This document shows, piece by piece, positions 6,818-61,435 of a stretch of 64,000 nucleotides of DNA. The translations under genes and the position numbers were made by a program. How positions within the stretch are numbered: the stretch's first letter is position 1; each line of letters opens with the position of its first letter. The stretch lies in IMG/VR virus record IMGVR_UViG_3300046787_000408, positions 62,001 through 126,000 of that record, one strand, 5' to 3'. The notes under the pieces are model-generated. The model was not told the DNA's origin and did not search any database. It worked only from the letters and a program-made list of their open reading frames with translations.

Positions 6818-6910
6818 AGGATATTTATGGCGGACCTTTGGCAAAGGGCACCGTAACAGCCCTTTTTTAGTGGCGATCCATAAATATTAGAACTTGAAAA
6901 GGAATCGACC

Positions 6911-10222: not shown

Positions 10223-10267
10223 GGGCTAGAGATTACAGCTAAATAAAACATATAGGAGATATCAAAA

Positions 10268-13961: not shown

Positions 13962-13965
13962 TAAC

Positions 13966-15858: not shown

Positions 15859-15862
15859 TATC

Positions 15863-16688: not shown

Positions 16689-17068
16689 TGCGAGCACGTG
16701 AGTTTATTCGTGAGCAGAAAGAACTGCCAGCTGAGCAGGCCAATCCCATGCGTTACACTTATGTGATTCCTGGTCTAAGTGCAGCTGACCCTTATAAAAA
16801 TTATAGATTTGGTGTGGCCATGGCCAGAGCCCGCAGTGATGCTGGCACAGATGGTATCAATGCTAAATTTCCTGAGTGGGATAACGAAACAGCATTTGGT
16901 GAACATGGCGTGGTTGCTGGCATGAATGCCGGTATTGCTCAAGTTATTGATCAAGCATTGAGCATGACCAAAACACCCGGCGGCAAGAAAATAGTGTCTA
17001 CTCCTGCTAGTACAGAACCCACGTTTGTGGACACACAAAGCCCAATTAAAGCATTTAAAGGATATTGA
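16688..17068 (+). CDS. MRAREF-family small protein 2
   Basis: Starts MRAREFIRE and ends DTQSPIKAFKGY. Confidence 0.7.
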   Translation: MRAREFIREQKELPAEQANPMRYTYVIPGLSAADPYKNYRFGVAMARARSDAGTDGINAKFPEWDNETAFGEHGVVAGMNAGIAQVIDQALSMTKTPGGKKIVSTPASTEPTFVDTQSPIKAFKGY

Positions 17069-17069
17069 A

Positions 17070-17417
17070 ATGAGAGCCTCAGAAATACTACGCCAAATGG
17101 CTGACATGATTGACGCAAAGTCACAACCTGAACATTCGCATGATGATACGCATGACAGTGACTTGATTCCGGTACCCGATGGTGTGTTTTTGCCCCCACT
17201 ACAAGGCAAGTACGAACTGTTGAAAAAAGCAGTGGGTGTGGACAATGCATTTGATGAGAACGCAGGCAACCAGTCAGACGATCCCGAAGCATCAAACCAC
17301 AAAGTAACGCCCATGGAACCTGATGAACAAGATGCACTGGACCGTATGAAAAAAGCAGCTGGCATCAATGCACTGATTGTGCATGATCTTGGTGATGACG
17401 AGCCATTGGACAGTTAA
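17070..17417 (+). CDS. Small acidic protein (MRASEIL...)
   Basis: Start re-picked at 17070, directly after the previous stop. Confidence 0.65.
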   Translation: MRASEILRQMADMIDAKSQPEHSHDDTHDSDLIPVPDGVFLPPLQGKYELLKKAVGVDNAFDENAGNQSDDPEASNHKVTPMEPDEQDALDRMKKAAGINALIVHDLGDDEPLDS

Positions 17418-17429
17418 GAGTAGCCTGCA

Positions 17430-18896
17430 ATGAACTTTATTCAAAATTTCTATACCAGTCGCGACAACAATACAGATGGCAATACCTATGTAGGGCAACA
17501 GGATCGACTGTGGTGGAATCCTAATACTAATGCAATCTATGTAAATTCAGCCAATGTGGCCGGCGGTACCCCAGTAACATTGCCAGCTACCGCTAACTTG
17601 ACAATCAACAGCCTTACGGCTAACACTGCAACAATCAACACTAACCTAGTGGTCACTGGCAACATTAGCCCAGCAGCCAACAACAAGATTGGCGGTATTG
17701 CACCTGGGCCAGGTATTAACATTTCCAACATTGGTCTGCTCACAATTGACTCAGCCGGACTTCCTGTTAGTTTTGGAGACTTTTATGCCAACGTAAATCA
17801 GTTGAGCATGGTTAATGCTAATGAGGCTATGTACTTGGTATCCAATGGCACAGGCAACATCAATCTCATTGGCGGAGTAAACTTCTACAAACCCAATGGA
17901 TTCCCTCCATCTACGGAACCGTTTTTTAGAGCCAAGAGTGACGGACAACTGAGAATTTTAGTACCAGCTGAAGATCCCTTTGAAGGTGGTGTGGAAATCA
18001 TTGGAAGTTCCACAGGCAATTACCTTGCTCCCGGCAGTCCCGGTACCATGCTACACCTCACTGGTAATCCTGGAGTACCAACTCGCTTGTATATTGACGG
18101 CAATGCTGAATACGCCAGTTTTGTGGCTCGTCGATTCAACGGCAATGTTGCTGTGCCTACGCAGGTCCTAGCTGGACAAGATGTGTTACGCATCAACTCA
18201 ACTGCGGCCACAAATCTTGGTGGCGGCAACGTGGGCAACGTGGCCATGGCACAAATTCGTACCACTGCTCTAGAAAATCAAACTTCCACAGCCCAAGGAT
18301 CATCAATCACATTTACGGTGACACCTATTGGATCAGCAGCAAGTGCTAGGGTAGATGTTGCCAACGTCACAGTAGCCAACGGCATTACAGCTACTAAATT
18401 TACTACAACAGGCAATATCTCTGGTGGAAATCTCAATCTTTCTGGAAATATAACAGCTGACTATGTACAAGCCAACAATTTTGGTAATGTAGGCAATGTT
18501 GAAATTGAAGCCGGCGAGACCTATTGGTATTTTAATACAGACAACACATTCACAGGCAACGGTAACATCATAGTTGACACAGTTACTGCCAACCTTATAG
18601 GCACAGCTACCACGGCCACAAACCTCGCCGCAGCCACCAGCATATTGGCCGGCACATTGACCATAGACCCTGCCAACATCAACAAAACTTCAGCCAGCAC
18701 ACAGACTTTTACTCTAACTGGATTGACCACCAGCCACAAAATTGTAATCACTTCGGGAACAGCACTAACTTATGGTGTTGTCATTGCGGCCGCTTGGGCC
18801 AGTGCAGCTGATACAATCAGCATTGAGTTCCAAAACTACACTGGCGGCGGTGTTAATCTTGGCAGTACAAACATACAATACTTTGCCTGGGTATAA
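17430..18896 (+). CDS. Tail fibre / appendage-like structural protein
   Basis: N/T/G/A-rich beta-repeat composition (GNISGGNLNLSGNITA) and N-terminal YVGQQDRLWWNP motif. Confidence 0.6.
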   Translation: MNFIQNFYTSRDNNTDGNTYVGQQDRLWWNPNTNAIYVNSANVAGGTPVTLPATANLTINSLTANTATINTNLVVTGNISPAANNKIGGIAPGPGINISNIGLLTIDSAGLPVSFGDFYANVNQLSMVNANEAMYLVSNGTGNINLIGGVNFYKPNGFPPSTEPFFRAKSDGQLRILVPAEDPFEGGVEIIGSSTGNYLAPGSPGTMLHLTGNPGVPTRLYIDGNAEYASFVARRFNGNVAVPTQVLAGQDVLRINSTAATNLGGGNVGNVAMAQIRTTALENQTSTAQGSSITFTVTPIGSAASARVDVANVTVANGITATKFTTTGNISGGNLNLSGNITADYVQANNFGNVGNVEIEAGETYWYFNTDNTFTGNGNIIVDTVTANLIGTATTATNLAAATSILAGTLTIDPANINKTSASTQTFTLTGLTTSHKIVITSGTALTYGVVIAAAWASAADTISIEFQNYTGGGVNLGSTNIQYFAWV

Positions 18897-18898
18897 CA

Positions 18899-19156
18899 TT
18901 GGAAGTTACCTGGATTAATCCCGTAGTCCGGGGCAGTTGTAATTCACAACTCTGCGGTGGTGCTTGCTGTCGTTTTAAAAACTATACCAGTTCCACAGAA
19001 TACACAGAGTCATGGTGCGAGCATTTTGATCAACAAAACTTGAAGTGTCAAATATACGAAACTCGTCCCGAAGGATGCCGTAGGTATCCAGATGTTTTTT
19101 CCTTAACATCTTTCCCCACATACTCTGGTTGCGGATACCGTCTTGAAGAAGCATAA
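18899..19156 (+). CDS. YkgJ/UPF0153-like cysteine-cluster protein
   Basis: CNSQLCGGACC...CEHFD....CQIYETRPEGCRRYP. TTG start. Confidence 0.7.
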   Translation: MEVTWINPVVRGSCNSQLCGGACCRFKNYTSSTEYTESWCEHFDQQNLKCQIYETRPEGCRRYPDVFSLTSFPTYSGCGYRLEEA

Positions 19157-19166
19157 ATATCAAACT

Positions 19167-19604
19167 ATGAAAAAACTTCTAACACTTTTACTCATCGTGC
19201 CTTGCTTGGCATTTGCACAACCCAAACAAAAACCTGGTGTTGTGTATGACGCTGTGATCACTAGAGTGATCGACGGCGACACAGTAGGCATTCAAGCCAC
19301 TTGGTTGCCAGCACCACTCAAACCAGAACTCAGCATTAGAGTGTTTGGCGTTGATACTCCTGAAAAAGGACATCGTGCTCAGTGTGCTAGCGAAGCTCAA
19401 CGTGGCGAAGCAGCCACTGCTTTTACCAAGGCAGCAATTGCCAACAGTCAAAAGCGACAGATTGTGCTCATGGACTGGGACAAGTATGGTGGACGTGTGC
19501 TTGGCGACGTTTTGCTGAACGGTGTTAGCCTACGCCAACAACTGATTGCCAATGGATTTGCCCGTGAGTACTACGGCGAAGCCAAAACTTCTTGGTGTCA
19601 ATAA
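19167..19604 (+). CDS. Staphylococcal-nuclease (thermonuclease)-like protein with signal peptide
   Basis: MKKLLTLLLIVPCLAFA signal peptide, then RVIDGDT, IRVFGVDTPE, DKYGGRVLG, L..NG.A motifs. Confidence 0.88.
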   Translation: MKKLLTLLLIVPCLAFAQPKQKPGVVYDAVITRVIDGDTVGIQATWLPAPLKPELSIRVFGVDTPEKGHRAQCASEAQRGEAATAFTKAAIANSQKRQIVLMDWDKYGGRVLGDVLLNGVSLRQQLIANGFAREYYGEAKTSWCQ

Positions 19605-19622
19605 ACTGCCCGTAAATACGGG

Positions 19623-20762
19623 ATGAGTAATTTCTTTTGCGCAGCCCCTTGGCGTGGGCTGCATATCAATCCCCGTGGCGATGTCAAAACCTGCTGTGCC
19701 GGCGACCCCAACATGTTGGGCAACCTCAACAGCAACACCATCACAGAGATACTGGATTCAGATCTCTTAAAACAAATACGCAGCGAAATGTCACAAGGAC
19801 GAGCACACAAATACTGCTCCAACTGTGTACAGGCCGAACGCTTTGGTGCAGATTCAGAACGCAAGTGGCACAACGACACCAATCCCAATTTTGACTATGC
19901 CACAGCTGGAGAGCAGTATCACTATCCTGTGATTGTGGATGTGCGTTGGAACACCACTTGCAACCTCAGTTGTAACTATTGCAGTGAATGGGCCAGCTCC
20001 AAATGGTCAGCACTCAAGGGCATTCCGTTCAAGTCAGGCTCAAGGCCCTACTATGAACAAGTGTGTGACTTTCTTGAACAACACAAATCGCACATTCAAG
20101 ACGTTGCACTTGTGGGCGGAGAGCCTTTGCTGCTACCCGAAAACGAACGACTGTTGGATGTTATCCCAGAAGATTGTGCTGTGACCTTGATCACCAACAT
20201 GAATGTGGATCTTGACAAGAACAAGATCTTTAAGAAACTAGCACAACGCAAACGAGTTGGGTGGAGCATGAGCTTTGACAACATTGGCGACAGATTTGAA
20301 TATGTGCGTTATGGCGGCAAGTGGAGCATGCTAACAGAGAACTTGGTCAAAGTCAAAGACTTGTTCAAACAAGGCCAGTGGGGTGGTATTCATGCAGTGT
20401 ACAACATCTACAATGCCACACGTATTGTGGAGTTTCGTGAATGGGCTGCTGAACAAGGTGTGTCAGTGTTGTGGCAGAATCTGTTTCAACCCGATTATCT
20501 GGATCCGTTCTTGCACGGACCAGAAGTTGCTGCCGCTGCCGCAGCTGAAATTGAAAGATTCTATGCTACAGGCCTAGCAACACCAGCAGAGCGTCAATTC
20601 TTTGACAATGCTTTGACCACATACCGTGCAGTTACACAAGAACGATCAGGTATCACCAGCAAGTTTCGAGAACATATTGCCGAGATTGAAACTCAATACC
20701 ACAAAGACCAAGCTGGAAAGTTTGCGCAGTTGTGGCCTGAATTATCACATCTAGTACTATGA
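19623..20762 (+). CDS. Radical SAM protein with N-terminal SPASM/twitch-like domain
   Basis: FCAAPW..L.I.P.G....CC and C..C, then CNLSCNYC and GGEP. Confidence 0.88.
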   Translation: MSNFFCAAPWRGLHINPRGDVKTCCAGDPNMLGNLNSNTITEILDSDLLKQIRSEMSQGRAHKYCSNCVQAERFGADSERKWHNDTNPNFDYATAGEQYHYPVIVDVRWNTTCNLSCNYCSEWASSKWSALKGIPFKSGSRPYYEQVCDFLEQHKSHIQDVALVGGEPLLLPENERLLDVIPEDCAVTLITNMNVDLDKNKIFKKLAQRKRVGWSMSFDNIGDRFEYVRYGGKWSMLTENLVKVKDLFKQGQWGGIHAVYNIYNATRIVEFREWAAEQGVSVLWQNLFQPDYLDPFLHGPEVAAAAAAEIERFYATGLATPAERQFFDNALTTYRAVTQERSGITSKFREHIAEIETQYHKDQAGKFAQLWPELSHLVL

Positions 20763-21496
20763 AACCATTACACGCTTGGAGTAGCTATGCAGGACAAACG
20801 ATTGATTGGATCAGCCCTGACAGCAAAGAAAACTACCAACAGCACATGAATGATCCTGACAAACGCAAACTGTTGCAATTGTTTGGGTGGGAACACCAAC
20901 AGATCAAGTATACATTCAACAGTGACGGTTTTCGTACAAATGAGTTTGGTGGCGGCCCCAACTTTGTAACTATTGGATGCAGTTTCACTCAAGGTGTTGG
21001 AGTGCATCGTGAAGACACTTGGGCACAATTGGTTAGTGATCAACTGGGATTGCCTGTGTACAATCTTGGAATATCTGGAGCTAGCTCAGACACTTGCTAC
21101 AGAATCATCAAACATTATGCACCAATACTCAAGCCACAGTTTGTGGTATTGCTGGAGCCTAGAATCAATAGAACTGAGCTACATCACAACGCAGGCCAAC
21201 CGCCACATGTGATCAACTGGGCATATGACGCTGCTTCCTGGGGCAACAGTGCCTATACAAAAACTTGGTTAAGCAATGATACCAACTTGCAGCTACACGC
21301 AGAAAAGAATCAAGCAGCAATTGCGCATGTGTGTGCTCAACTTGGTATTCCTGTAGTAATGTATGCACCCGACGACTACCTAGATCTTGTGGTAGACAAA
21401 ACACAACTGGACTTGGGTCGCGACTTGTTGCATCCTGGACGCTTAAATAATCGTGCATTTGCGCAAGTGGTATATGACCACGTGAAAGACTTATGA
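20759..21496 (+). CDS. SGNH/GDSL-like hypothetical protein
   Basis: TIGCSFTQG, NLGISGAS, and D..HPG near the C-terminus. Confidence 0.55.
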   Translation: MKPLHAWSSYAGQTIDWISPDSKENYQQHMNDPDKRKLLQLFGWEHQQIKYTFNSDGFRTNEFGGGPNFVTIGCSFTQGVGVHREDTWAQLVSDQLGLPVYNLGISGASSDTCYRIIKHYAPILKPQFVVLLEPRINRTELHHNAGQPPHVINWAYDAASWGNSAYTKTWLSNDTNLQLHAEKNQAAIAHVCAQLGIPVVMYAPDDYLDLVVDKTQLDLGRDLLHPGRLNNRAFAQVVYDHVKDL

Positions 21497-23079
21497 GTAT
21501 CAAACCCACATTAGACACAGTGCTGGTAAAATCCCCGCACCGTAAAGAAACATACACACAAGACCAGCTAACTGAGTTTGCTCGTTGTGCTGACCCTGTA
21601 ACTGGTCCCATGTATTTCATGGATAACTTTTTCTATATTCAGCATCCCACACGAGGCAAGATGTTGTATCAGCCATTTGAATATCAAAAGCGACTGATTG
21701 AAAATTATCACAACAGCAGATTCTCAATTTCCTTGATGCCTCGACAAACTGGTAAGTCAACATCAGCAGCAGGTTATTTGCTATGGTATGCTATGTTTGT
21801 TCCTGACGCTACTATTCTAGTGGCTGCACACAAGTATCTAGGCGCACAAGAGATTATGCAACGTATAAGATATGCTTATGAGTTGTGCCCCAATCACATT
21901 AGAGCAGGTGCTACCAGCTACAACAAAGGCTCGCTAGAGTTTGACAACGGATCACGTATTGTATCGCAAACCACTACAGAAAACACTGGTCGTGGTATGT
22001 CTATCACGCTGCTGTATCTGGACGAATTTGCGTTTGTGCGACCCACAATTGCCAAAGAGTTCTGGACTTCTATTACGCCTACACTGAGTACTGGTGGTAA
22101 AGCTATTATTACAAGTACTCCAAACTCCGACGAAGATCAGTTTGCGCTGATTTGGAAAGGTGCCAACAAAGTCGAAGACGAGTACGGAAACCCTAGACCC
22201 AATGGCTTGGGTATCAATGGATTCCGAGCGTTTCGTGCGTTCTGGCGTGAACATCCTGATCGTGATGATTCATGGGCTGACGAACAACGAGCACAGTTGG
22301 GAGAAGAACGATTCCGTCGAGAAATGGACTGCGAATTCGTTATCAACGACGAGACCTTGATTAGTCCACTAAAATTGTTGGATCTCGAAGGTGTAGAGCC
22401 CTCCAGCAAGACTGGACAAGTGCGTTGGTACAGACCTATACAAGCAGACAAGATCTATATTGTGGCCCTGGATCCTAGTCTAGGCACCGGGGGTGACCCT
22501 GCTGCTATACAAGTATTTGAAGCAGACACCACAGAGCAAGTAGCTGAATGGCGACACAACAAAACAGACGTGCCCACACAAATCAAGATCATGGTAGATA
22601 TCATAAAAGAACTACATGCTGTGGTCAAAGACGAAAAAAAGATCTACTACTCTGTAGAAAACAACACTCTAGGCGAAGCAGCACTAATTTCTATCAACGA
22701 ATACGGTGAAGAAAACATCCCGGGTTATTTTCTCAGTGACAATTCAGTACAAGGACAAAACGGGCGCAGAATTCGCAAGGGATTTACCACCACAAACAAA
22801 AGCAAGATTGTGGCCTGTAACAAGTTCAAGATTCTAGTGGAATCGGGGCGTATGAAACTGTACAGTAAACCCTTGATTAGTGAACTCAAAAACTTTGTTG
22901 CACTGGGCAGTAGCTATGCAGCCAAGCCTGGCGAAACAGACGACCTAGTAATGAGTACTTTGCTAGCTACCCGCATGCTGATGTTGTTGCAAACTTATCA
23001 CCAAGAACTAGATTCGCACCTTAAAGATCATGGGGACAACATCATTGAACCTATGCCTTTCATTTCTATGATGCGCTAA
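21493..23079 (+). CDS. gp17: Terminase large subunit
   Basis: PRQTGKST Walker A, LLYLDEFAF Walker B, ITSTPN, ALDPSLGTGGD and DDLVMS nuclease motifs. Confidence 0.95.
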   Translation: MSIKPTLDTVLVKSPHRKETYTQDQLTEFARCADPVTGPMYFMDNFFYIQHPTRGKMLYQPFEYQKRLIENYHNSRFSISLMPRQTGKSTSAAGYLLWYAMFVPDATILVAAHKYLGAQEIMQRIRYAYELCPNHIRAGATSYNKGSLEFDNGSRIVSQTTTENTGRGMSITLLYLDEFAFVRPTIAKEFWTSITPTLSTGGKAIITSTPNSDEDQFALIWKGANKVEDEYGNPRPNGLGINGFRAFRAFWREHPDRDDSWADEQRAQLGEERFRREMDCEFVINDETLISPLKLLDLEGVEPSSKTGQVRWYRPIQADKIYIVALDPSLGTGGDPAAIQVFEADTTEQVAEWRHNKTDVPTQIKIMVDIIKELHAVVKDEKKIYYSVENNTLGEAALISINEYGEENIPGYFLSDNSVQGQNGRRIRKGFTTTNKSKIVACNKFKILVESGRMKLYSKPLISELKNFVALGSSYAAKPGETDDLVMSTLLATRMLMLLQTYHQELDSHLKDHGDNIIEPMPFISMMR

Positions 23080-23089
23080 ATATACTACT

Positions 23090-25072
23090 ATGGCCCAAGA
23101 ACACAACATTGAACAAAAATTACACGACCTGCTGATCAGCCGGGACTTTCATCCTGAATTAACTGGCAAAGACGGCCGTCCAAGCGATGCTGCTGAAGCC
23201 AAAACATTCACGTTTGACTATATTAGCAGTACTGGCAAAAACTACGGCACCATGGTAATTGTGTTGGCCAATGACAATGAAATGAAAATCATGTACGGCG
23301 ACAATTTGGGCAGGACCATGGAAGGCAACGACAAGCAAGAGTTCTTTGACTTTCTCCAGGCCGTACATCAGTTTGCTGTACGAAACTTTTGGACACCTTC
23401 TGCTGAAGATCTCAGCAAGCTCAAGTATGTGCAAGCTGGCATGGCTGCTATCAAAGAAGGCTTGTTTGAAGGCTACTATGGCAATCGTCGTGTGAGCTAT
23501 GCTGGCGAGCCCACAGAAGCCAGAATGATGATTCGTCACAGTCGTGTGCTAGGCGAAAATGATGCTAGATTCCGATACATTGAAAGTATCTATATTGAAA
23601 CAGCTGACCAAGAACGTTTCAAACTACCATTTACAAACATGACTGGAGCTCGAGCCATACTAGAGCATGTGCGTCAAGGCGGTAAGCCCTATGATGTGCG
23701 TGGTAATCACATTTGTGAGATGGTGAGTGAACTCAAGGTCTTGAACCGTTTTAATCGAGCCAGTGCTGGCCGTGTAATGGAAGGTGTCACACAAGCCATT
23801 GTGGAACAAGCACAAGCATATTACCAAAGCCTACGTGAAAGTCTCAAACGCCTGGGTCACAGTCGCGGCTACGCTACCTACTTTGAGTCATGGCACCCAG
23901 CAGAAATTGCTGAACACGAAAGCCTAGTAGAAGATATCAAAACCATGTTTGTGCAACAAACATTGGACACCAGAATCGAAGCAGCATTGCCATTGCTGGC
24001 TCGCATACAACAACAAGGAAATGCTATGAAAGAAGCTGAAATTTTTGAAAGCTGGATCAACAATATAACTGAAGGCACATGGAACTTGCCAGAAACACCT
24101 GAGCAAGTGGCCAAACTAAAAGACCTCATGAGCCAAGAACTTATTGTGGGCCCTGATGCTACCAATGCTACTGAGCAACTGTACGACTTGGTAGGCGATG
24201 ACGAATTGTTTGATCGTCTTGGTGATCTAGCTCAACGTGATCCGCGAGCAAACGCCTGGAACGACACAGACGTTATGGATCGTCTGCGTGAGTTGGGCAT
24301 CGAAACAGAAACACAAGCACCTGCTGGTGCCGAAGGTGATGCAGCACCAGTTGACCCTGCTGCTGAAGTTCCTGCTCCTGAGCAACAACCGATAGCAGAA
24401 GCTGGCGGTGCAAAACAATACAGCGCATTCAAGCGTGAGTGGCGTGCTAAACACGGTAGTGATGCTAAAGTTCCAGCATACGACAGTAAAGAATACACGT
24501 CCTACTGTTATCGCCAAAACGATAAAAAGCAAGGGGTAGCAGAAGAAATCAATGTCATGCGCAAGGCAGCTGGGTTGCCAGTGGTAGAAGGTCGTATGCT
24601 TGACGAAAGCGGCGAAACATTGAGTCATATCATGGATCGGTTCAAACACGAAGTTGATCAGTTTGAAAAAGGCGGCGACCTAGACGACGATTTGTACTAT
24701 GCATTGTTTGACTACTATTCAGACCACGGTGAGATCCCATACGGCATTGCTAAGGGTCGTGATGGAGATCCTTTTGAATGGATCACAGATCGTTTAGATC
24801 AAGAACTTAGTACAGGCAATTACGCTCCGCGAGTATCAGAAGCAGATGCACTTGCTACATTTGAAGTCATGAGTGGATTTGACGCACCAGTTGCTGAAGG
24901 GTCATGCAACATGACTGCTGAGGGCGAGTACTGCCCAGAACATGCTTTAGCCGAGTGTGGAGGCATGTACGAAATGGGTACTGTAGCTGGATCAGTAGCG
25001 CCTGTGATTGGTGAAAATCGAGACAGTGATGCATTGCTGGCACGAATAAAAAGTCTGGCACTGATCAAGTGA
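23090..25072 (+). CDS. Large modular acidic protein, probable head-associated
   Basis: 660 aa ORF after a TAAATA motif. Modules are separated by xAE/xxE sites (QGVAEE, PVVEG, PVAEG). Confidence 0.6.
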   Translation: MAQEHNIEQKLHDLLISRDFHPELTGKDGRPSDAAEAKTFTFDYISSTGKNYGTMVIVLANDNEMKIMYGDNLGRTMEGNDKQEFFDFLQAVHQFAVRNFWTPSAEDLSKLKYVQAGMAAIKEGLFEGYYGNRRVSYAGEPTEARMMIRHSRVLGENDARFRYIESIYIETADQERFKLPFTNMTGARAILEHVRQGGKPYDVRGNHICEMVSELKVLNRFNRASAGRVMEGVTQAIVEQAQAYYQSLRESLKRLGHSRGYATYFESWHPAEIAEHESLVEDIKTMFVQQTLDTRIEAALPLLARIQQQGNAMKEAEIFESWINNITEGTWNLPETPEQVAKLKDLMSQELIVGPDATNATEQLYDLVGDDELFDRLGDLAQRDPRANAWNDTDVMDRLRELGIETETQAPAGAEGDAAPVDPAAEVPAPEQQPIAEAGGAKQYSAFKREWRAKHGSDAKVPAYDSKEYTSYCYRQNDKKQGVAEEINVMRKAAGLPVVEGRMLDESGETLSHIMDRFKHEVDQFEKGGDLDDDLYYALFDYYSDHGEIPYGIAKGRDGDPFEWITDRLDQELSTGNYAPRVSEADALATFEVMSGFDAPVAEGSCNMTAEGEYCPEHALAECGGMYEMGTVAGSVAPVIGENRDSDALLARIKSLALIK

Positions 25073-34540: not shown

Positions 34541-34566
34541 TGTTTTCCTTGTAAGTTTTGCGCCAC

Positions 34567-34576
34567 TAAATATTTA
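34567..34576. promoter_or_regulatory. Palindromic bidirectional late-type promoter TAAATATTTA
   Basis: TAAATA on both strands, overlapping, between the divergent genes at 34540(-) and 34593(+). Confidence 0.6.
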
Positions 34577-34592
34577 TATACACACATAATAC

Positions 34593-37016: not shown

Positions 37017-37047
37017 ATGTGGGTATTTAACGGTGTAAATATCCTGT

Positions 37048-52159: not shown

Positions 52160-53113
52160 ATGATTACTTGCGTAGATGCGTTTAAAAATCTAAACGTTGT
52201 TATACAGCAAGGTGGTACTAGAATATCGCCTTGTTGTATATCGCCTACTGTGCCGGTACAGCAGTTGGATTTTAACCACAGCTACCTAACTTCTATTAGA
52301 GAAAGTTTTTCTCAAGGAACATGGCCTTCTAGCTGTGTTAATTGCAAAACTAACGAGCAAGCAGGATATACTAGTAGACGGATAGGCAGTAACCAATGGT
52401 ATACTGATCATCAAATAAACAACCACTCAGTTGAATTAACTAGGATAGACTATTGGACTGGTGACACCTGCAACCTTGCTTGTGTAATATGTGGTCCTGA
52501 AAACAGCAGTATGTGGCAACAGGAATTGGGGATTCAAAAATCATCAGTTGCCAACACACTATGGAAGCAACTGAATCTAACAGCATTAAAATCTGTACAC
52601 TTCAACGGAGGAGAACCGTTGTTGAGTAAAGAGCATGTGCGATTTTTACATGCAATTCCAAATAAATCACAAGTATATTTAAATTACAATACCAACGGAA
52701 CTATTTTACCTAATCAAGAGCTACAACAATTGTGGGCTGAATTCAAGTTAGTACAATTGGATTTTAGTATTGATGATGTAGGCAAAAGATTTGAATACCA
52801 GCGATATCCTGCCCAATGGGATACAATTGAAAACAATTTACAATGGTACATTGAATCTGCTCCGCACAATTGTATGTTCGCAGTCAACACCACAGTGGGG
52901 ATATTGAATCAAAATAACTTAGCTACTCTTGATCAGTGGTTGTTGGAGCATTTTACCCAATCAAGATTTGGTGATCCAATTGAGCATCGTCGACAGAATG
53001 CATTGGGTAAATTTTCAATAACATCTGATATTATACAGGTACGACTGCACCTTGACACACTAGATCAAAGACGCAAAACCAATTGGCGTCTTGTGTTCCC
53101 AGAGTTAGCGTGA
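52160..53113 (+). CDS. Radical SAM protein with N-terminal twitch/SPASM-like domain
   Basis: ISPCC, C..C, CNLACVIC, NGGEP, YNTNG. Confidence 0.85.
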   Translation: MITCVDAFKNLNVVIQQGGTRISPCCISPTVPVQQLDFNHSYLTSIRESFSQGTWPSSCVNCKTNEQAGYTSRRIGSNQWYTDHQINNHSVELTRIDYWTGDTCNLACVICGPENSSMWQQELGIQKSSVANTLWKQLNLTALKSVHFNGGEPLLSKEHVRFLHAIPNKSQVYLNYNTNGTILPNQELQQLWAEFKLVQLDFSIDDVGKRFEYQRYPAQWDTIENNLQWYIESAPHNCMFAVNTTVGILNQNNLATLDQWLLEHFTQSRFGDPIEHRRQNALGKFSITSDIIQVRLHLDTLDQRRKTNWRLVFPELA

Positions 53114-53785: not shown

Positions 53786-54982
53786 ATGGAAAAAGGTAAA
53801 AATTTGTATTGTGCCTGGGCTGACACAGGCCTAGCACTGCATAATTCAGGACGATGCTTGCTGTGTTGTCATAGCCAAACTTATTTGCAGGACACAAATG
53901 GCCAGGAAATATACCTGGACACAGGCTCTATTGAACAGGCCTGGAACAGTCCCACTAGAAAACAAATTCAAGCAGATCTTGAAGCTGGTATTCAGCATCC
54001 CAATTGCAGCGCATGTTGGAACGAAGAAAGTGCAGGGCGTGCAAGTCGCCGCACAGAAGCCAATCGACAGTTTGCTGATATCACTGTCAACCCTGACCGT
54101 CCGCAACTGGTAGACCTTAAACCTGGCAATACCTGCAACTTGGCATGCAGAACCTGTTGGCCTGAAGTCAGCAGCAAATGGTATCGAGACTATTGGGAAG
54201 TTGAAGCTCAGAAATGGGAACCAGACTACCGCAAGTATCTTGATGGGTGGAAACGTATCCGCACCAGTTATGACCGCGATAACGTAAAGCTGTGGTCTGA
54301 CCTAGAATCGTGGTTTACAGACGTAGAGTACTATGACATCTACGGGGCAGAGCCAATGCTGTTGGACAATGTGTTTGTGATCTTACAACAAAGTGTGGCA
54401 TCAGGTAGAGCAGCACATCAAGGCATACACATCAACACCAACTGTACTATATGGAATCAAAGCTACATTGATATTCTTGCACAATTCAAGAACGTGGTTA
54501 TTGACGTTAGCATTGATGGGATTGGCGCACAATATGACTATATTCGTTATGGCGAAACTTGGAGCACTGTGGAACTGAATCTTGCTAGGTATCAGAATCT
54601 AGTTCGTAACCACAGCAACATTCGCATGCATGTTTGTGTCACTGTGTGTATTCTAAATGTATTGCAAGTGATGAACCTGCAGGAATATTTTTGTGCCCGT
54701 GGTGTTCCTGTATTTTTTAACATGGTACATCATCCACAACACTTGAATGTGAGATCCTTGCCTGACACTATCAAACAACAGGTACGAGCCAAGTTTGCAC
54801 CTGCTGAACCCAATTGGCAAATAACCAGTATACTGGATTTCATGGACATGCCCCTGGACAATCAACCTCAACTGTGGCTCAAGTTCTTGGAGTCAACAAA
54901 AAAGCTAGACCTGTTACGAGAACAAGATCTAGCTGAAACGTTTCCTGAATTGGCAGAATTGATTAGCCGGCTACAGCCTTGA
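53786..54982 (+). CDS. Radical SAM protein with N-terminal twitch/SPASM-like domain
   Basis: YCAW...G...LCC, C..CW..E, CNLACRTC, GAEP, INTNC, SIDG. Confidence 0.87.
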   Translation: MEKGKNLYCAWADTGLALHNSGRCLLCCHSQTYLQDTNGQEIYLDTGSIEQAWNSPTRKQIQADLEAGIQHPNCSACWNEESAGRASRRTEANRQFADITVNPDRPQLVDLKPGNTCNLACRTCWPEVSSKWYRDYWEVEAQKWEPDYRKYLDGWKRIRTSYDRDNVKLWSDLESWFTDVEYYDIYGAEPMLLDNVFVILQQSVASGRAAHQGIHINTNCTIWNQSYIDILAQFKNVVIDVSIDGIGAQYDYIRYGETWSTVELNLARYQNLVRNHSNIRMHVCVTVCILNVLQVMNLQEYFCARGVPVFFNMVHHPQHLNVRSLPDTIKQQVRAKFAPAEPNWQITSILDFMDMPLDNQPQLWLKFLESTKKLDLLREQDLAETFPELAELISRLQP

Positions 54983-55904
54983 TCACAGCAAAGTTAAAGA
55001 CTGGTTGTTCAGTAGTGGTTCCTGCAGTGGTTTTATAGCTGATACGGAAACTACCTGCAGCCACAGCAGTAACGTGTATTTCATACAGATCAGTGCCAGA
55101 CTTTTGATTTACAATAACAACGTCAGTTGCAGCCACTGTGGAATTGGTTACAGTAAAGCTCTGCCAAGATGTCGTACCAGCAGCAGAAAACAAAGTAATG
55201 GCACCAGATACTGTGTTTAGTGTAACACCTGTGGTTCTACTGGTACCTTGTGTTACAGCACCACCTGCACCTGTAGCGTAGCCAATACCAGCTGTGGCAG
55301 AATTAGAAGTTACACCATTGGTGTAACGATTCAATGGACGGTTAAGGTCTTGAATAGTTATTGCTGCACCGCTATCGTATGTGGTAAATTCAAATGTGTA
55401 TGTGCCAGTAGCAGCAAATGTGATCACACTGCCTGCTAGGCCTTGAATACCAGTAGTGCCCAAACTTACTTCAGCAGGTAGTGTCACAGTGTGTGCGATA
55501 TTGGTAATGTTTATTGTTACACGAACCCATCCTGCAGAGTTATTGGCGGGCCAGTTAGAAAAGCCCAATTGAATACTGCCAGTTGTGCTAACAGTTTGGT
55601 AATGCCCAGCAGTGTAGTCAATGCTGACCAAGCCCGAAGTAGTTGCAATCTGTACCAATGTTGCGCTAAAATTACGTACTTTAGCACCAACTAACGGTGC
55701 GCCCAACATGTTGTTGTCTAACGTGCTGCCAGTTAATGCTTCTTTGAATATAGATTTGTTCTGTAATTCAGTGATTTCATTAGCAGCATACTCAAAGTTG
55801 GTTTTGGTATTGGTAAAATTATCACGGAACCCTTTGGTATTATTGGGTTGTCCAGCAACAGGGTAGTTGCCGTTGATGTCTTGGGGATTGATTTGACTAG
55901 TCAT
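54963..55904 (-). CDS. Virion structural protein (tail/baseplate appendage-like)
   Basis: T/A/G/N-rich. N-terminal YPVAG..N...GFRDNF and C-terminal VTQ.TSRTTGVTLN beta domain. AGGA RBS and TAAATA at 55935-55940. Confidence 0.6.
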   Translation of the reverse strand: MTSQINPQDINGNYPVAGQPNNTKGFRDNFTNTKTNFEYAANEITELQNKSIFKEALTGSTLDNNMLGAPLVGAKVRNFSATLVQIATTSGLVSIDYTAGHYQTVSTTGSIQLGFSNWPANNSAGWVRVTINITNIAHTVTLPAEVSLGTTGIQGLAGSVITFAATGTYTFEFTTYDSGAAITIQDLNRPLNRYTNGVTSNSATAGIGYATGAGGAVTQGTSRTTGVTLNTVSGAITLFSAAGTTSWQSFTVTNSTVAATDVVIVNQKSGTDLYEIHVTAVAAGSFRISYKTTAGTTTEQPVFNFAVIKAVAG

Positions 55905-55983
55905 GTTGTTCCTTTGCTTTGCAGCAGTTGTAGATATTTATTAGAATTCAGAATCCGCTAAATAATCCAAAGGCCCTTGAACA

Positions 55984-56244
55984 ATGCAGAAGAAAACAAA
56001 AAGTATCTTGGAAGAATTGGACACATTGTACGAAGAAAAATATGCCGAGAGAGATCGCAGGTATATTATTGAAACTCGTGCTAGCAATGTAATTGCTTCT
56101 GCCATTCGCTTGATAGAACAAATTGAGTCAGAGTTCCCCGGGGAACAAGCAGAAAATCTCACACGCAAGCTGCTCAATGCCATAAGAACAAAAGACTCTG
56201 GAAAGTTTTCCAGATCAGTAAGGAAAACCGATGCAGATTCATGA
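55984..56244 (+). CDS. Small helical hypothetical protein
   Basis: ORF after TAAATA at 55959. Confidence 0.65.
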   Translation: MQKKTKSILEELDTLYEEKYAERDRRYIIETRASNVIASAIRLIEQIESEFPGEQAENLTRKLLNAIRTKDSGKFSRSVRKTDADS

Positions 56245-56908
56245 AATAACACACCGACAGATAAACGAAATATTGGGCACAATGGCCAAGGCTGTGGGCG
56301 GCGCCCTAGCGCAAAAAGCTGCATCAACACAAGGTATTGACCTAGACAGTCAACCTGACAAAGTGGGCGTGGGACAACGACAGGGTGCTGCCATGAAAAT
56401 GAACGCTGGCCTTATTCAAGCCCTGGCCAAGAAAGCACAAGAATCCTGGACCACAGAAGTACAAAACATGATTGTAAAAAGTGAGCCCAAGATCATGAGT
56501 GCGTCCCAGATCAAACTGCCCACAATTGAATTGGAACTTCAGGCCTTGATCAACAGCTTGGCTGGATTTGATGTAACCAGCCTGGCATCGGCCAAAGACC
56601 CCAGTGGACAAAGTCAACTTACTATTAAACAGCTATTGCAGGCCAAAGATGAAGTGGTCAAGGCCACTGTGGCACCCAAGGCTGATCCTGCTGCAATGAG
56701 TCGTGCATGGAACAGTTTGGCTACCATGATTTCCCAAGCACAAAACGTCAAGGCATTTGTGCCAGCTGAAGCTGGCGGCACACAGCCAGCAAAAATTACA
56801 TTCGACGCACAAGGTAAAATGTTGTACAACAACAAGCCTTTTGACGCTAGAGATCAAAGCCATGTCATGGCTCAACAACTTCAGGCCAAGGCCGCACCCA
56901 AAACATGA
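56231..56908 (+). CDS. Probable internal head protein
   Basis: MQIHEI...INE N-terminus. A/Q/K-rich helical. Confidence 0.55.
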   Translation: MQIHEITHRQINEILGTMAKAVGGALAQKAASTQGIDLDSQPDKVGVGQRQGAAMKMNAGLIQALAKKAQESWTTEVQNMIVKSEPKIMSASQIKLPTIELELQALINSLAGFDVTSLASAKDPSGQSQLTIKQLLQAKDEVVKATVAPKADPAAMSRAWNSLATMISQAQNVKAFVPAEAGGTQPAKITFDAQGKMLYNNKPFDARDQSHVMAQQLQAKAAPKT

Positions 56909-58824
56909 AACTATTACAAACTCTATTAGAAGGCGGTAATGTCTTTAAAGACAAACAAGGACAGCCATTAACACAGCGCATCAATCAAGCAGATGTGCCT
57001 GCTACCATTGCCTATCTTGAAAACATTCTAGGCATGGAATTCCCCCAAGAACGTTGGTTGGGATCCACAGGTCGCAAGCCCACATCTGGAGACTTGGATT
57101 TAGCTGTGGATCTTGGCGAAATCAACAAAGATCAACTTGCTGCCAAGCTCACACAGTTTGTGCAAAGTCAAAAACAAGACCCACGTGAGTGGGTTAAAAA
57201 AGCCGGCGAAGTGCATTTCCGCACTCCCATTGCTGGAGATCCCAACAAAGGCTACGTACAAACAGACTTTATGTTTTTCCCTAACTTGGACTGGGGCACA
57301 TTCTTCTACGGTGGCGCAGAGGGATCCAACTACAAAGGCATGAATCGCAATGTGCTGATGTCAAGCATTGCCAAAGCACTGGGACTCAAAGTGGGTGCCA
57401 ATGGCATGTTTAGCCGTGCCACAAATGAATTGGTTCGAGGCGGTCAAGATCCCAACTATGTGGCCAACGTTTTGCTGGGACCTGCATTCTCCCGAGAAAA
57501 TCTAAAAAATGTTGAAAGCATTTACAAAGCACTCAGCAATGATCCTGATCGAGAAATCAAACTAAAAGACTTCCGTGAATATCTAGCACGTGAAGGCCTA
57601 CAAGAGCCACAACAGTCCATGGCCGAAGATGGCGTGGGCTTTTTGGGACGACTTCGCGATCGCATTGTAAATCAAGGCATGATGCCCTTGGTAGAAGCGT
57701 CTAACCCTTATGAATTGTACGAAGCAGAAGCAGCCGGTGTAGGCGGCAGAGCCAAGGGCATTGAACACTTGGAAGATCTAGTGTTTCGCCGTGGTACCCA
57801 GGGTATCCTAGATGCCTTGGAAATTGTGCAACACGCCACAGAAAAACCCAGTACAACCACTGCTAAATGGGACGGCAAACCTGCTGTGATATTTGGTCGT
57901 AAGCCTAGTACAGGTGAGTTTGTGCTTACAGACGGATCAGGGTTCGAAGCCAAGGGCTACGATGGTCTAGCTACCAGTCCCAGAATGATGGCAGACATAC
58001 AAAGTCGACGTTCGGGCGACAGAACAGAACTGATTCAATTGTATGCTACTCTGTTCCCGGTACTGGAGGCTGCACTGCCCTCCAACTTCCGTGGCTATGT
58101 CAAAGGTGACTTGTTGTACATGTCAACACCTCCTGAGATTGCAGGAAACTATGTGTTCCGTCCCAATACTGTTGAGTACAAAATTCCAGCACGAAGTTCC
58201 TTGGGGCAACGCATTGGCAACAGCAACATTGGCATTGCTATTCACAGCATGTATGCAGATGTTGGCGATGCACGTCAGCCCTTGAGCGGCGTAAAGTTCA
58301 ATGATGTTCCAGGCTTGATGTTAGAGCGTCCTGCTACACCGCGACAACTCACTACAGAACCTGCCAAGGTCAAGCAACTCAAACAACTGGTACGTAGCAG
58401 TGGTTCGGCAATCAACACACTGTTCAACCCTGTGGAATTGCGTGCTAACAAGATCACTGACTTGGCCAAACTGTGCGTGGACTATATCAACACCAAGGTA
58501 GGAACTCCACTCAACCCACAAACACTATTGCCTGAGTTTGGGGAATGGCTCAAGACCAAGGTAACACCGCAAAAGTTCCGTAACATTGTGGAATACCTGC
58601 AGAGCCCTACGTCAAATACACAGGCCATGGCTGCTGCATTTACAGCGTTCTTGTTGTTGCATGACATCAAGATGGATATCTTGCGACAAGCTGATCTTGA
58701 GCATCCTGGACAAGAAGGTTGGGTAATGGCTACCCCTGCAGGCTATGCCAAGGCAGTAAATCGCTTTGACCCCAATGCATTTGCTGCTCAAAATAGAATG
58801 CAAAATAATCCTCAAACCCGGTGA
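56905..58824 (+). CDS. Pol-beta-superfamily nucleotidyltransferase fused to an RNA/DNA-ligase-like domain
   Basis: N-half LGSTG....SGDLDLAV and VQTDF. C-half EHLEDL, KWDGKP, VKGDLLY, QEGWV, KAVNR. Confidence 0.75.
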   Translation: MKLLQTLLEGGNVFKDKQGQPLTQRINQADVPATIAYLENILGMEFPQERWLGSTGRKPTSGDLDLAVDLGEINKDQLAAKLTQFVQSQKQDPREWVKKAGEVHFRTPIAGDPNKGYVQTDFMFFPNLDWGTFFYGGAEGSNYKGMNRNVLMSSIAKALGLKVGANGMFSRATNELVRGGQDPNYVANVLLGPAFSRENLKNVESIYKALSNDPDREIKLKDFREYLAREGLQEPQQSMAEDGVGFLGRLRDRIVNQGMMPLVEASNPYELYEAEAAGVGGRAKGIEHLEDLVFRRGTQGILDALEIVQHATEKPSTTTAKWDGKPAVIFGRKPSTGEFVLTDGSGFEAKGYDGLATSPRMMADIQSRRSGDRTELIQLYATLFPVLEAALPSNFRGYVKGDLLYMSTPPEIAGNYVFRPNTVEYKIPARSSLGQRIGNSNIGIAIHSMYADVGDARQPLSGVKFNDVPGLMLERPATPRQLTTEPAKVKQLKQLVRSSGSAINTLFNPVELRANKITDLAKLCVDYINTKVGTPLNPQTLLPEFGEWLKTKVTPQKFRNIVEYLQSPTSNTQAMAAAFTAFLLLHDIKMDILRQADLEHPGQEGWVMATPAGYAKAVNRFDPNAFAAQNRMQNNPQTR

Positions 58825-58885
58825 TTTTTGTCACTTGTATAAATAAGTGTAGGGCTAAAGCCCACAAACTTAAAGGAAAACAATC

Positions 58886-59272
58886 ATGGCATATCTAACC
58901 CCAGTTAACGGTGACGCACAACCGGTATTTAACATTGACGTTCGTAACGGACCAGTTGCAGCTTCTGCATCTACCGCAGCTACTCCAGTAAACTTTACTG
59001 GTCCTAAGCTGGACTTCTTCCGCGCTGTGGCCAACACTACTGTTGTGACACAACAAGGTGTGAACGAGTACGTGGCAAACGTTATTCAAGCTGTACAACA
59101 AACCAGCACAGTAGCAATGTATCAAGTTGACGGTACAGTGTTGAGCTTCGCAGTGTTCCCAACAGGCGCATTTGCTGACGCTGCTGCTTTCTTGGCTGCT
59201 GCCAACGTTACCTACACAGGTTACCAGTTGGACAGCGCAACCAGCATTGGTTTCAAACTAGCAGCTTCCTAA
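58886..59272 (+). CDS. Small structural protein with its own promoter and terminator
   Basis: ATAAATA at about 58840 and AAGGA RBS. A/V/T-rich. Terminator follows. Confidence 0.65.
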   Translation: MAYLTPVNGDAQPVFNIDVRNGPVAASASTAATPVNFTGPKLDFFRAVANTTVVTQQGVNEYVANVIQAVQQTSTVAMYQVDGTVLSFAVFPTGAFADAAAFLAAANVTYTGYQLDSATSIGFKLAAS

Positions 59273-59293: not shown

Positions 59294-59324
59294 AGCCCAG
59301 GGTAGAAATATCCTGGGCTTTTTG
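59294..59324 (+). terminator. Rho-independent terminator
   Basis: AGCCCAGG-loop-CCTGGGCT-TTTT. Confidence 0.8.
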
Positions 59325-60046: not shown

Positions 60047-60540
60047 TCAAACACGAGAAACTTGAACGCTTTGCCACTAAAGAAATGCAAAGTCTAGCTA
60101 CCAGGCTTATTGTGCCTGATGGCAAGGACGGCTATCATGCATTTGGCAAGTATCATGTATCTCCCAAAACTGAACATGTTACTGTTGGTATCAAGAATAG
60201 AGATCCACTAACCTTTGGAAGCAAACGCAGCGCTATCAGTTGGTGTGTAGCAGATCACCTAAATCAGCACGCTCTAGCACGTAGCATTCATTTGCTAGAC
60301 AACAAAAAACATAGCCTAGCGGCGGACATACAGTGCCGACGGGCTCTAGCCGAAAGAAGTCGCAGCCAAGACTTCTATGAATCAGTAACAACCAAGATAC
60401 AAAGCAAGGTTGAGTACTATAATGTGTTGACTCAGGAATTAGAGAAATGCATTAATTCGGCTAAATATTGGCAAATAAGAGGATTCTCCCATGAAACTGA
60501 ACGACCTGGCCGCTCCGCGTCCCACAAAACAAATCGCTAA
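60043..60540 (+). CDS. Hypothetical protein
   Basis: ATGA coupling. Start re-picked. Confidence 0.6.
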   Translation: MIKHEKLERFATKEMQSLATRLIVPDGKDGYHAFGKYHVSPKTEHVTVGIKNRDPLTFGSKRSAISWCVADHLNQHALARSIHLLDNKKHSLAADIQCRRALAERSRSQDFYESVTTKIQSKVEYYNVLTQELEKCINSAKYWQIRGFSHETERPGRSASHKTNR

Positions 60541-61435
60541 AGTATTTGAAAGTTACTTTGGTACTGGTATCAAGTTTGAAAGCCTAAGTCGCAATCAGAC
60601 TCGAAATCTGTTGAGCCGTGTGCAAGGCTTGCTCAAAGAGCACCGTAGCACATCAGCTAGACACACCAGCGAACAAAATCCCAGTTACCTCAAACTGGTT
60701 ATGATGGAACAAGCACTGACTCAGCGAGTTAAAGAAAACATGGTGCCGCCAGTGGGTCAAACTACTCCACCTGGACAACCAGCCAAGCCTGGACAACCAG
60801 CCAAGCCTGGACAACCGGCCCCTGCTGTGGCAGGCGCTGCGGCTAAAGATCCCAAGTTGGCTGCGGCACTGAAGAAAAGCCAAGCAGGCCAAACACTGAA
60901 TCCTGAAGAACAAAAGATGGTAGCTGGTGCTGCCATGATGGCGCAAGAAAGTCGTTTACGCCGTGCCTACAAGATGTTGAAAGAAAGTGAAGTTCAACAA
61001 GCTCAAGTTGTTCTTGCTGCCCAAGACATGGTAGACAAAATGCAAGGTATGTTGGAAGACGTATCTGAACTACAGTTCAAAGAACTGCCAGCCTTGGTTG
61101 ATTCAATCAAGAACCAAGTTGGTATTGACCAAGCCACTCAGTTCAACGGTGATGCTAGTGCTGCACTCAGCGGACTCATGCAAAACCTGCAAGCAGCCAA
61201 GCAACAACTGGACCAAGCCCTGGGCGTGGTAACTGGTACTGCTGCTCCAGCTGCTCCTGACGCTGCGGCAATGGGTGCTCAAGCTGGTGCTGAACTAGGC
61301 GCAGAAGCTGGTGCTGACATGGGTGCTGAACTAGGCGCAGAAGCTGGTGCTGAAGATGACCTAGCTGCTGTTGATGCTGAAGCTGAACTAGGTGCAGAGC
61401 CAGCTGGTGCTGCTCTAGGCCGCGCACGTAGATAA
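60491..61435 (+). CDS. Probable head core/scaffold-like protein with low-complexity repeats
   Basis: Coiled coils, PGQPAK x3, GAELGAEAGA repeats, LKESE site. Confidence 0.6.
   Translation: MKLNDLAAPRPTKQIAKVFESYFGTGIKFESLSRNQTRNLLSRVQGLLKEHRSTSARHTSEQNPSYLKLVMMEQALTQRVKENMVPPVGQTTPPGQPAKPGQPAKPGQPAPAVAGAAAKDPKLAAALKKSQAGQTLNPEEQKMVAGAAMMAQESRLRRAYKMLKESEVQQAQVVLAAQDMVDKMQGMLEDVSELQFKELPALVDSIKNQVGIDQATQFNGDASAALSGLMQNLQAAKQQLDQALGVVTGTAAPAAPDAAAMGAQAGAELGAEAGADMGAELGAEAGAEDDLAAVDAEAELGAEPAGAALGRARR
60770..60820 (+). repeat. 18-bp coding tandem repeat (about 2.8 copies)
   Basis: CCTGGACAACCAGCCAAG unit encoding PGQPAK. Confidence 0.9.
61286..61353 (+). repeat. 32-bp direct repeat, 36-bp period, coding
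   Basis: GGTGCTGAACTAGGCGCAGAAGCTGGTGCTGA twice, encoding GAELGAEAGA. Confidence 0.85.

Follow-up and report, generated by a model that had tools for sequence, protein, structure and literature searches.

What does a phage protein do that joins a polymerase-like nucleotidyltransferase to a ligase-like domain? The question is posed by a 639-amino-acid (aa) protein encoded by the open reading frame (ORF) 56905–58824 (+ strand, stop codon included) of a 64,000-nucleotide stretch of the IMG/VR virus record IMGVR_UViG_3300046787_000408 (positions 62,001–126,000 of the record; hereafter the window). A first-pass annotation had described it as a fusion of a Pol-beta nucleotidyltransferase with a ligase-type covalent nucleotidyltransferase, showing signs of capsid packaging. 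Motifs, conservation and predicted folds agreed with the two-enzyme fusion. We propose, with an even chance of being right, that the protein is a bifunctional 'extend and seal' polynucleotide repair enzyme, expressed late, probably associated with the virion, and with DNA as the likelier substrate. Its novelty would lie in a polymerase-ligase repair fusion whose two parts are both very divergent within known superfamilies and which shows evidence of virion association. The window derives from an uncultured jumbo myophage of freshwater, a relative of PA5oct and Atu_ph07. Its tail sheath was 39–45% identical to the sheaths of PA5oct, Atu_ph07 and Phosso, and its DnaB helicase was 48% identical to that of PA5oct. 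The record of the source phage is approximately 300 kb long and close relatives reach approximately 360 kb; blastn against phage genomes revealed no close relative.

The ORF, Pfam, homologue searches and AlphaFold2 models together delimited two domains (all coordinates refer to the + strand unless indicated). The models had predicted local distance difference test (pLDDT) scores of 90.9 for the whole protein and 94.1 for the C-domain alone. The N-domain (aa 1–256; 56905–57672; pLDDT >90) was predicted from Foldseek matches and conservation to be a minimal family-X-polymerase-like nucleotidyltransferase with a palm and a thumb-like part. It ends in an amphipathic helix, FLxRLRDRIVNQGM (aa 243–256; 57631–57672), conserved in the alignment. 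Fused proteins have this helix after the N-domain, as do some in which the N-domain stands alone (P0155, P0235), and the helix may be a docking or interaction element. A flexible, poorly conserved linker (aa 257–283; 57673–57753) is disordered in the models (pLDDT <50 for aa 256–283). The C-domain (aa 284–639; 57754–58821) corresponds to DUF6267, and Pfam, the model and PDB matches point to a divergent covalent nucleotidyltransferase of the ligase/capping type.

The N-half of the translation contains LGS (52–54)-x8-GDLDL (62–66) and VQTDF (D121), and thus the Pol-beta superfamily signature that the first-pass annotation had read there. Conservation was determined from 39 N-domain sequences with 30–57% identity, in which G56, G62, D63, D65, P108, G111, D121 and G167 were invariant. 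The invariant residues include the metal-binding DxD (D63-L-D65; codons 57091–57099) and the third carboxylate (D121; 57265–57267). The hG[GS] turn, the DxD on the next strand and the later third carboxylate were all present, and their strand placement in the model fits the superfamily. Past the third aspartate the model shows a helix, a long helix, a hairpin and further helices, a succession that presumably recalls the thumb of Pol beta and that we treat as a lead only.

Foldseek, which had been suggested as a check, placed the N-domain beside the family X polymerases. Pol lambda, Pol beta, Pol mu and TdT led the PDB matches (probability 1.0, 160–208 aligned columns, E = 2.9e-3 to 0.08), and the RNA-specific Cid1 scored much worse than these DNA polymerases. 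Among viral models, the N-domain matched a 174-aa PolX of the giant virus Harvfovirus (template modelling (TM) score 0.57) and an entomopoxvirus AP-endonuclease/PolX protein. More distant clusters among its structural neighbours in the Atlas carry the Pfam DNA_pol_B_palm and thumb domains. By sequence, the N-half matched nothing in Pfam or NCBIfam, phmmer and profile hidden Markov model (HMM) searches of the PDB with the N-domain retrieved nothing, no polymerase included, and none of the 39 sequences matched the DNA_pol_B_palm or DNA_pol_B_thumb models at E up to 0.1. With about 256 aa and a single helix before the palm in the model, the N-domain has no 8-kDa and fingers domains with helix-hairpin-helix. 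This does not exclude family X, since Pol X of African swine fever virus (ASFV) likewise lacks both. The predicted structure supports a Pol-beta-superfamily nucleotidyltransferase whose nearest relatives are the family X DNA polymerases. A review of phage polymerases and the jumbo-phage survey of Iyer et al. name no phage family X polymerase; the survey describes RlaP, Rnl1/2 and RtcB and no family-X-like enzyme. The N-domain would therefore represent a new polymerase-like family in phages, one that has no Pfam family.

In the C-half, Pfam recognized DUF6267 (PF19782) at aa 286–621 (E = 1e-30; 107.7 bits against a gathering cut-off of 27), the family that the first-pass annotation had suggested. 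KWDG (K321), VKGDLLY (D402), QEGWV (E604/G605) and, downstream, AKAVNR (K616/R620) were found where that annotation had located them. Conservation was read from 45 C-domain sequences, again with 30–57% identity. Invariant were E290, D291, K321, D323, G324, G331, R332, D402, P420, Y425, H447 and K589, and at least 90% conserved were H288, E604, G605, K616 and R620. Both the lysine and the aspartates on which the earlier proposal depended (K321; D63, D65, D121) are therefore invariant in homologues. Motif I (K321-W-D-G; 57865–57876), with the predicted nucleotidylated lysine, lies between two antiparallel strands of the model. Motifs III (GD402LL), IIIa (F418-x-PN-x-V-x-Y425), IV (E604-G605-hV) and V (K616-x-V-x-R620), assigned by inspection, were conserved and lay on strands of the model, IV and V (58714–58764) on adjacent ones. 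The motifs were also kept in cyanophage S-PM2 and Methylophilales phage Melnitz; KxDG with its lysine was kept in these two and in PA5oct gp256. Judged by secondary structure, the models place an all-helical insertion (aa 486–599; 58360–58701) with the invariant K589 between motifs IIIa and IV, and this insertion is a candidate nucleic-acid-binding module in place of the OB domain of other ligases.

The 17 best PDB matches of the C-domain in Foldseek were all ligase-type covalent nucleotidyltransferases (probability up to 0.90, E = 0.009–0.3). Archaeal and human ATP-dependent DNA ligases came first (E = 0.009–0.09), followed by Rnl3, the Trl1 ligase domain and the ASFV ligase, with capping enzyme and T4 Rnl1 ranking lower. 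Since ordered invariant motifs, their placement on strands and uniform structural neighbours coincide, membership of the C-domain in this superfamily, as a very divergent ligase-type enzyme, is well supported, if not proven. A literature search found no description of DUF6267, although the family occurs in about 300 cyanophage records. The ligase-type assignment gives this common family, which most marine cyanophages carry and for which no function has been described, a concrete and testable role. It would also fill a known gap, that of the T4-like cyanophages without a recognized DNA ligase (PMC7824862).

The two domains are repeatedly found together. An exhaustive HMMER search gave 1500 representative clusters of relatives, and a word-indexed search, in which 8000 candidates were scored, gave 3971 metagenomic proteins at E up to 0.001; where the Atlas records taxa of the relatives, they are viral. 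Among the best 150 representative clusters, 65 were fused (58 in the order N-C, 7 in the order C-N), while 34 had the C-domain alone and 25 the N-domain alone. Fusion in both orders indicates a functional coupling of the domains. In contig L006 they are encoded by adjacent, overlapping separate genes. In Atu_ph07, a stand-alone N-domain gene (gp065) directly follows a ligase-like gene (gp066), the product of which starts with EKLDG, is named RNA ligase in UniProt, and matches Pfam RNA_ligase weakly (E = 0.002) and the C-domain structurally (E = 0.011). An hhalign comparison of DUF6267 with gp066 aligned motif I only (probability 1%, not significant), and phmmer of gp066 against the PDB gave nothing useful. 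In PA5oct, the N-domain homologue gp253 is three genes from the ligase-like gp256, which has EKIDG and EGYV..KIVDK and matches the DUF6267 HMM (E = 2.5e-6).

Fused partners of the two domains included HAD phosphatases (NT5C, DUF2608), and the larger relatives P0142 and P0161 combine a HAD phosphatase with polymerase-like and ligase-like domains. Amidoligase_2, Cu/Zn superoxide dismutase, PD-(D/E)XK and a ParB-like domain were further partners. A PPAT/NMNAT-like adenylyltransferase was a recurrent partner and universal in the cyanophage version. This domain, CTP_transf_like with a HIGH motif, was fused to either domain (P0144, P0143, P0138, P0216 and cyanophage proteins), and its closest solved relatives were, weakly, PPAT, NMNAT and NaMNAT. 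No polynucleotide kinase domain was present among the fusion partners examined.

Evidence for virion association came from homologues. The N-domain homologue gp65 of Atu_ph07 was detected in the virion proteome with 10 unique peptides (36.8% coverage), at the position in the gel expected of the full-length protein, and nearly all products from gp53 to gp69, except gp66, were detected in virions (PMC6102473 Table S5). For the N-domain homologue gp253 of PA5oct, the GenBank note reports detection by electrospray ionization tandem mass spectrometry, and the virions were purified in CsCl. Both virion-detected proteins keep the catalytic aspartates. The 86-aa gene (55984–56244), first of the string of genes that includes the 639-aa gene, matched phrog_11854 'virion structural protein' (E = 4e-14). 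Its product is homologous to Atu_ph07 gp068 (phmmer, 2e-7) and PA5oct gp259 (1e-17), small proteins that are both annotated as belonging to the virion, with further homologues in contigs L006 and L007; gp68 was found in Atu_ph07 virions by mass spectrometry (MS; 5 peptides, 64% coverage). In both cultured phages (PA5oct 13463–23247, contig L018; Atu_ph07 gp53–gp69), nearly all genes in the block right downstream of DnaB encode virion proteins that were detected by MS and have no known function, and replication and virion genes are interleaved there.

The sequence signals for packaging cited in the first-pass annotation did not hold. It had taken MKLLQTLLE as a T4-style N-terminal targeting peptide, which we reject. 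[LI]-x-E-G-G-N is the conserved start of the N-domain (L/I in 74/78, E in 75/78); most homologues have 4–6 residues before GG and two start at MGG, and the motif is also kept at internal positions of longer proteins, so that MKLLQTLLE is not a separable peptide. The tripeptides proposed as linker cleavage sites do exist (MAE at 239, LVE at 262, LYE at 271), yet they provide no evidence of packaging, as LVE and LYE fall in the poorly conserved, disordered linker. Virion association of the fused protein is nevertheless plausible by analogy, because of the proteomics of homologues and the operon context rather than any targeting peptide. Phages may load enzymes of nucleic-acid repair into their particles, as the detection of N-domain homologues in the virions of two jumbo phages grown in culture suggests.

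Late expression was suggested by the hexamer TAAATA. A copy at 55959–55964 lies 25 nt upstream of the 86-aa gene, at the head of the gene string, and a mirror copy (55935–55940, − strand) serves the gene 54963–55904. The window has 33 TAAATA copies, and 22 of them precede a gene start, in sense orientation, by no more than 60 nt (about 1.2 would be expected), compared with 12 of 48 for the next best A/T hexamer, so the promoter proposed in the first-pass annotation is a genuine motif. It stands before the sheath, tube, terminase and virion genes, and is probably the T4-type late promoter of this phage group. Other examples are at 6881–6886, 10240–10245, 21444–21449, 34571–34578 and 58838–58845. 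The motif often follows C or A, and back-to-back pairs occur in divergent intergenic regions (approximately 34560–34590, 37020–37045 and 55935–55964). The exact T4 late promoter TATAAATA was rejected as the upstream signal, its two copies in the window being at chance level, and a scan of the window for sigma-70-type promoters likewise gave chance level. No RNA runs holding the gene were found.

From the established motifs, conservation, folds, repeated fusion, synteny and virion detection of N-domain homologues, we infer the catalytic steps, the substrate and the packaging of this particular protein as follows. The gene would be transcribed from the late-type TAAATA promoter together with the small virion protein gene. 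Its product would be carried in, or tightly associated with, the virion and could act on the phage genome during entry or shortly afterwards. There, with D63, D65, D121 and two metal ions, the N-domain would extend a 3′-OH at a gap or break by one or a few nucleotides. K321 of KWDG would first be charged with AMP, from ATP or possibly NAD+; the AMP would be passed to a 5′-phosphate, and the C-domain would close the nick left by the N-domain. The helical insertion would stand where other ligases carry the OB domain. The substrate would be damaged or nicked phage DNA, in single-strand-break or base-excision-type repair.

DNA appears more likely than RNA as the substrate. DNA polymerases and DNA ligases are the structures closest to the two domains, and the module adjoins the replicative helicase in each of four lineages, namely this window, Atu_ph07/PA5oct, S-PM2 (gp43-UvsX-gp41-MazG-...-DUF6267) and Melnitz. 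Two further reasons are that the fused partners include nucleases, a phosphatase and a superoxide dismutase, and that T4-like cyanophages (cyanomyophages) have no known DNA ligase (PMC7824862) yet widely carry DUF6267. In line with this, the ten organisms most often matching T4 gp30 include no Synechococcus phages.

Several results weigh against the extend-and-seal reading. The structural matches of both domains miss E = 1e-3 (best for the N-domain, 2.9e-3), and those of the C-domain are weak (TM score approximately 0.2, root-mean-square deviation approximately 11 Å), which is likely due to the inserted 115-aa helical bundle (aa 486–599) and the missing OB domain. Sequence profiles connect the N-domain to no polymerase family. 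For the C-domain, ligase and capping Pfam families matched 0 of 45 sequences, profile and phmmer searches of the PDB found nothing, and an hhalign comparison of DUF6267 with six DNA ligases of phages was confined to motif IV (probability 0.6%, not significant). The protein ends approximately 20 aa past motif V, and both the OB domain and motif VI are absent; the RNA ligases Rnl1 and Rnl2 are not known to have an OB domain either. The ligase-like proteins gp66 of Atu_ph07 and gp256 of PA5oct were not detected in virions according to the published MS data and GenBank notes. Since Atu_ph07 also encodes a LigA-type DNA ligase and Rnl1, the module must be accessory in jumbo phages rather than the replicative ligase, and replication cannot depend on it everywhere. 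A simple repair model does not account for the frequent NMNAT/PPAT-like partner. Finally, the support for DNA over RNA is all indirect, and RlaP sets a precedent for Pol-beta enzymes that accompany RNA ligases.

That precedent underlies the alternative of RNA repair, the leading proposal of the first-pass annotation, which we consider unlikely but worth keeping in view. The N-domain would restore 3′ nucleotides of cleaved tRNA, as RlaP does, and DUF6267 would reseal the ends, countering anticodon nucleases, with packaging ensuring early availability. Pol-beta nucleotidyltransferases travelling with RNA ligases are an established theme, exemplified by RlaP/PF10127 (PMC7824862; bioRxiv 10.64898/2025.12.29.696909). 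Rnl3, the Trl1 ligase domain and T4 Rnl1 are among the structural matches of the C-domain, the gene beside the Atu_ph07 N-domain gene carries the RNA_ligase match and UniProt name mentioned above, and the HAD phosphatases among the partners are reminiscent of the phosphatase part of T4 Pnkp. However, the N-domain is not an RlaP: PF10127 did not match it at E up to 1, nor any of its 38 relatives (0/39 in all), and hhalign against T4 NrdC.11 gave a probability of 0.04%. Its nearest structures are DNA polymerases, with Cid1 far behind, and DNA ligases outrank RNA ligases for the C-domain. The 639-aa protein contains no kinase or phosphatase, contrary to the end-healing module of the first-pass annotation, and the partners examined supply no polynucleotide kinase. 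The window has no tRNA genes, and the context consists of replication and virion genes.

A further alternative is small-molecule nucleotide chemistry, in which lysyl-AMP, Pol-beta and NMNAT/PPAT-like enzymes would together synthesize or degrade a dinucleotide or an NAD-like compound, for instance to restore NAD+ or to interfere with defence signals. The recurrent fusion of CTP_transf_like to either domain and the weak kinship of this partner with PPAT, NMNAT and NaMNAT speak for such a role. The window protein itself lacks this third domain, both of its folds are those of enzymes acting on nucleic-acid ends, and there is no known pathway with this combination of enzymes. The first-pass annotation had also considered interference with nucleotide signals, but no CD-NTase, cGAS or OAS structure appeared among the structural neighbours of the N-domain (PDB and viral models). 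We therefore hold a small-molecule role to be quite improbable. Hardly credible is a purely structural role in the virion, in which the former enzymes survive in shape alone and catalyse nothing. The homologues are annotated as structural from MS and the gene sits in a virion-gene block; however, in both domains all catalytic residues show little or no variation across relatives of 30–57% identity, including the virion-detected gp253 and gp65, and a scaffold without its former activity would not be expected to be conserved in this way.

The extend-and-seal reading can be taken further, into territory where we expect to be wrong more often than right. DUF6267 might be an unrecognized class of polynucleotide ligase and, together with the NMNAT-like adenylyltransferase, the missing DNA ligase of T4-like cyanophages and of their relatives that infect Pelagibacter and Methylophilales, in none of which a ligase is known. 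In jumbo phages it might have been joined to a family-X-like polymerase and be carried in the capsid, perhaps with its lysine pre-charged with AMP, mending the injected genome before host nucleases or replication reach it.

Two observations concern DUF6267 in cyanophages. In the S-PM2 record AJ630128 (5986–7765), DUF6267 is split between p138 (HMM positions 6–175) and the start of p139 'cytidylyltransferase' (173–369), while UniProt holds an intact 591-aa S-PM2 DUF6267 protein. The split thus goes back to a frameshift or to a difference in sequencing, and the gene of the cyanophage encodes DUF6267 fused to an adenylyltransferase. Iyer et al. 2021 described PSSM2_317 as a stand-alone helical DNA-binding domain of ATP-dependent ligases in phages without a ligase. 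It is located at 18440–19063 of P-SSM2 (contig L005), and the same phages carry DUF6267. A ligase split between a PSSM2_317-type protein and DUF6267 is conceivable. That PSSM2_317 is DUF6267 itself was rejected, as the two belong to different gene clusters (T4-GC 313 and 71).

The gene order around the locus is primase, DnaB, radical-SAM genes, a divergent intergenic region, the 86-aa, 225-aa and 639-aa genes, a 128-aa gene and a strong terminator. The 225-aa gene (56231–56908), which has no assigned function, overlaps both neighbours, the 639-aa gene by ATGA, and Pfam, PHROGs and the Atlas gave no lead for it. A sequence scan located a copy of TATAAATA (58838–58845) just past the stop codon of the 639-aa gene and upstream of the 128-aa gene (58886–59272). 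The gene string ends at a strong intrinsic-terminator-like hairpin (59294–59319) with an 11-bp stem followed by a T run. The first-pass annotation had placed the 639-aa gene among virion genes. This held for the 86-aa gene and a 314-aa gene, which match virion-structural PHROGs, but not for the 5′ side with its primase, DnaB and radical-SAM genes. The 314-aa protein (60491–61435), the PHROG match of which is weak, has tandem PGQPAK repeats and a low-complexity acidic Ala/Gly/Glu tail. The intergenic region with the TAAATA copies also serves, in the divergent direction, the gene of a 313-aa Thr/Gly/Ala-rich protein (54963–55904, − strand; phrog_18251, function unknown), which resembles fibre or decoration proteins. 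Radical-SAM genes occur three times in the window (19623–20762, 52160–53113 and 53786–54982). In a 359-kb relative (L016:14937–17169), genes for NifU-like, Fe-S assembly and GNAT proteins and a further radical-SAM gene lie beside radical-SAM genes, an unexplained Fe-S enzyme set in a jumbo phage.

Among known systems, the packaged proteins of T4 (internal proteins and Alt, cut by gp21 after Glu) resemble the present case in that N-domain homologues are virion-associated and the relatives encode gp21-like prohead proteases. They differ in their targeting peptide; here the L-x-E before GGN belongs to the domain and also occurs internally. LigD of non-homologous end joining (phosphoesterase, polymerase and ligase) likewise fuses end processing, 3′-end extension and sealing, and relatives of the 639-aa protein add a HAD phosphatase. 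In contrast, its polymerase is of the archaeo-eukaryotic primase type and not Pol-beta/X-like, its ligase has the canonical nucleotidyltransferase and OB domains, and no Ku partner was seen here. RlaP (PF10127, including T4 NrdC.11), which adds 1–2 nucleotides to a 3′-OH before ligation (bioRxiv 10.64898/2025.12.29.696909), is also a Pol-beta-superfamily nucleotidyltransferase genetically tied to a ligase, a tie that here takes the form of fusion or adjacency. RlaP consists of the nucleotidyltransferase and a C-terminal helical domain, whereas the N-domain is nearest to family X DNA polymerases and has no PF10127 match.

The ATP-dependent DNA ligases (human Lig1, LigIV, archaeal enzymes, T4 gp30) and the ligase/capping superfamily share motifs I, III, IIIa, IV and V with the C-domain, in order and on strands, and these DNA ligases are its best structural matches. 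Unlike them, the C-domain has a helical insertion between IIIa and IV, lacks the OB domain and motif VI, has an extra conserved H-x-E-D before motif I, and shows no similarity at the level of Pfam or HH comparisons. The repair pair of ASFV, Pol X (O174L, 174 aa) and an ATP-dependent DNA ligase (NP419L) (PMC9353306), consists of two proteins. The protein described here is a single polypeptide of a virus with a bacterial host; its ligase part has no OB domain but a 115-aa helical insertion, its activity is predicted, and similarity to the ASFV pair is not detectable at the sequence level. In structure, ASFV ligase is among the C-domain matches, and a giant-virus PolX of the same 174-aa length has the TM score of 0.57 to the N-domain. 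In both cases a viral, minimal palm-plus-thumb polymerase of the family X type is paired with an unusual ligase; in ASFV the pair fills and seals breaks in the viral genome (PMC9353306). Packaged repair enzymes in phages would parallel those of giant eukaryotic viruses, and would be relevant to the survival of phage genomes in the face of damage from the environment and attack by the host.

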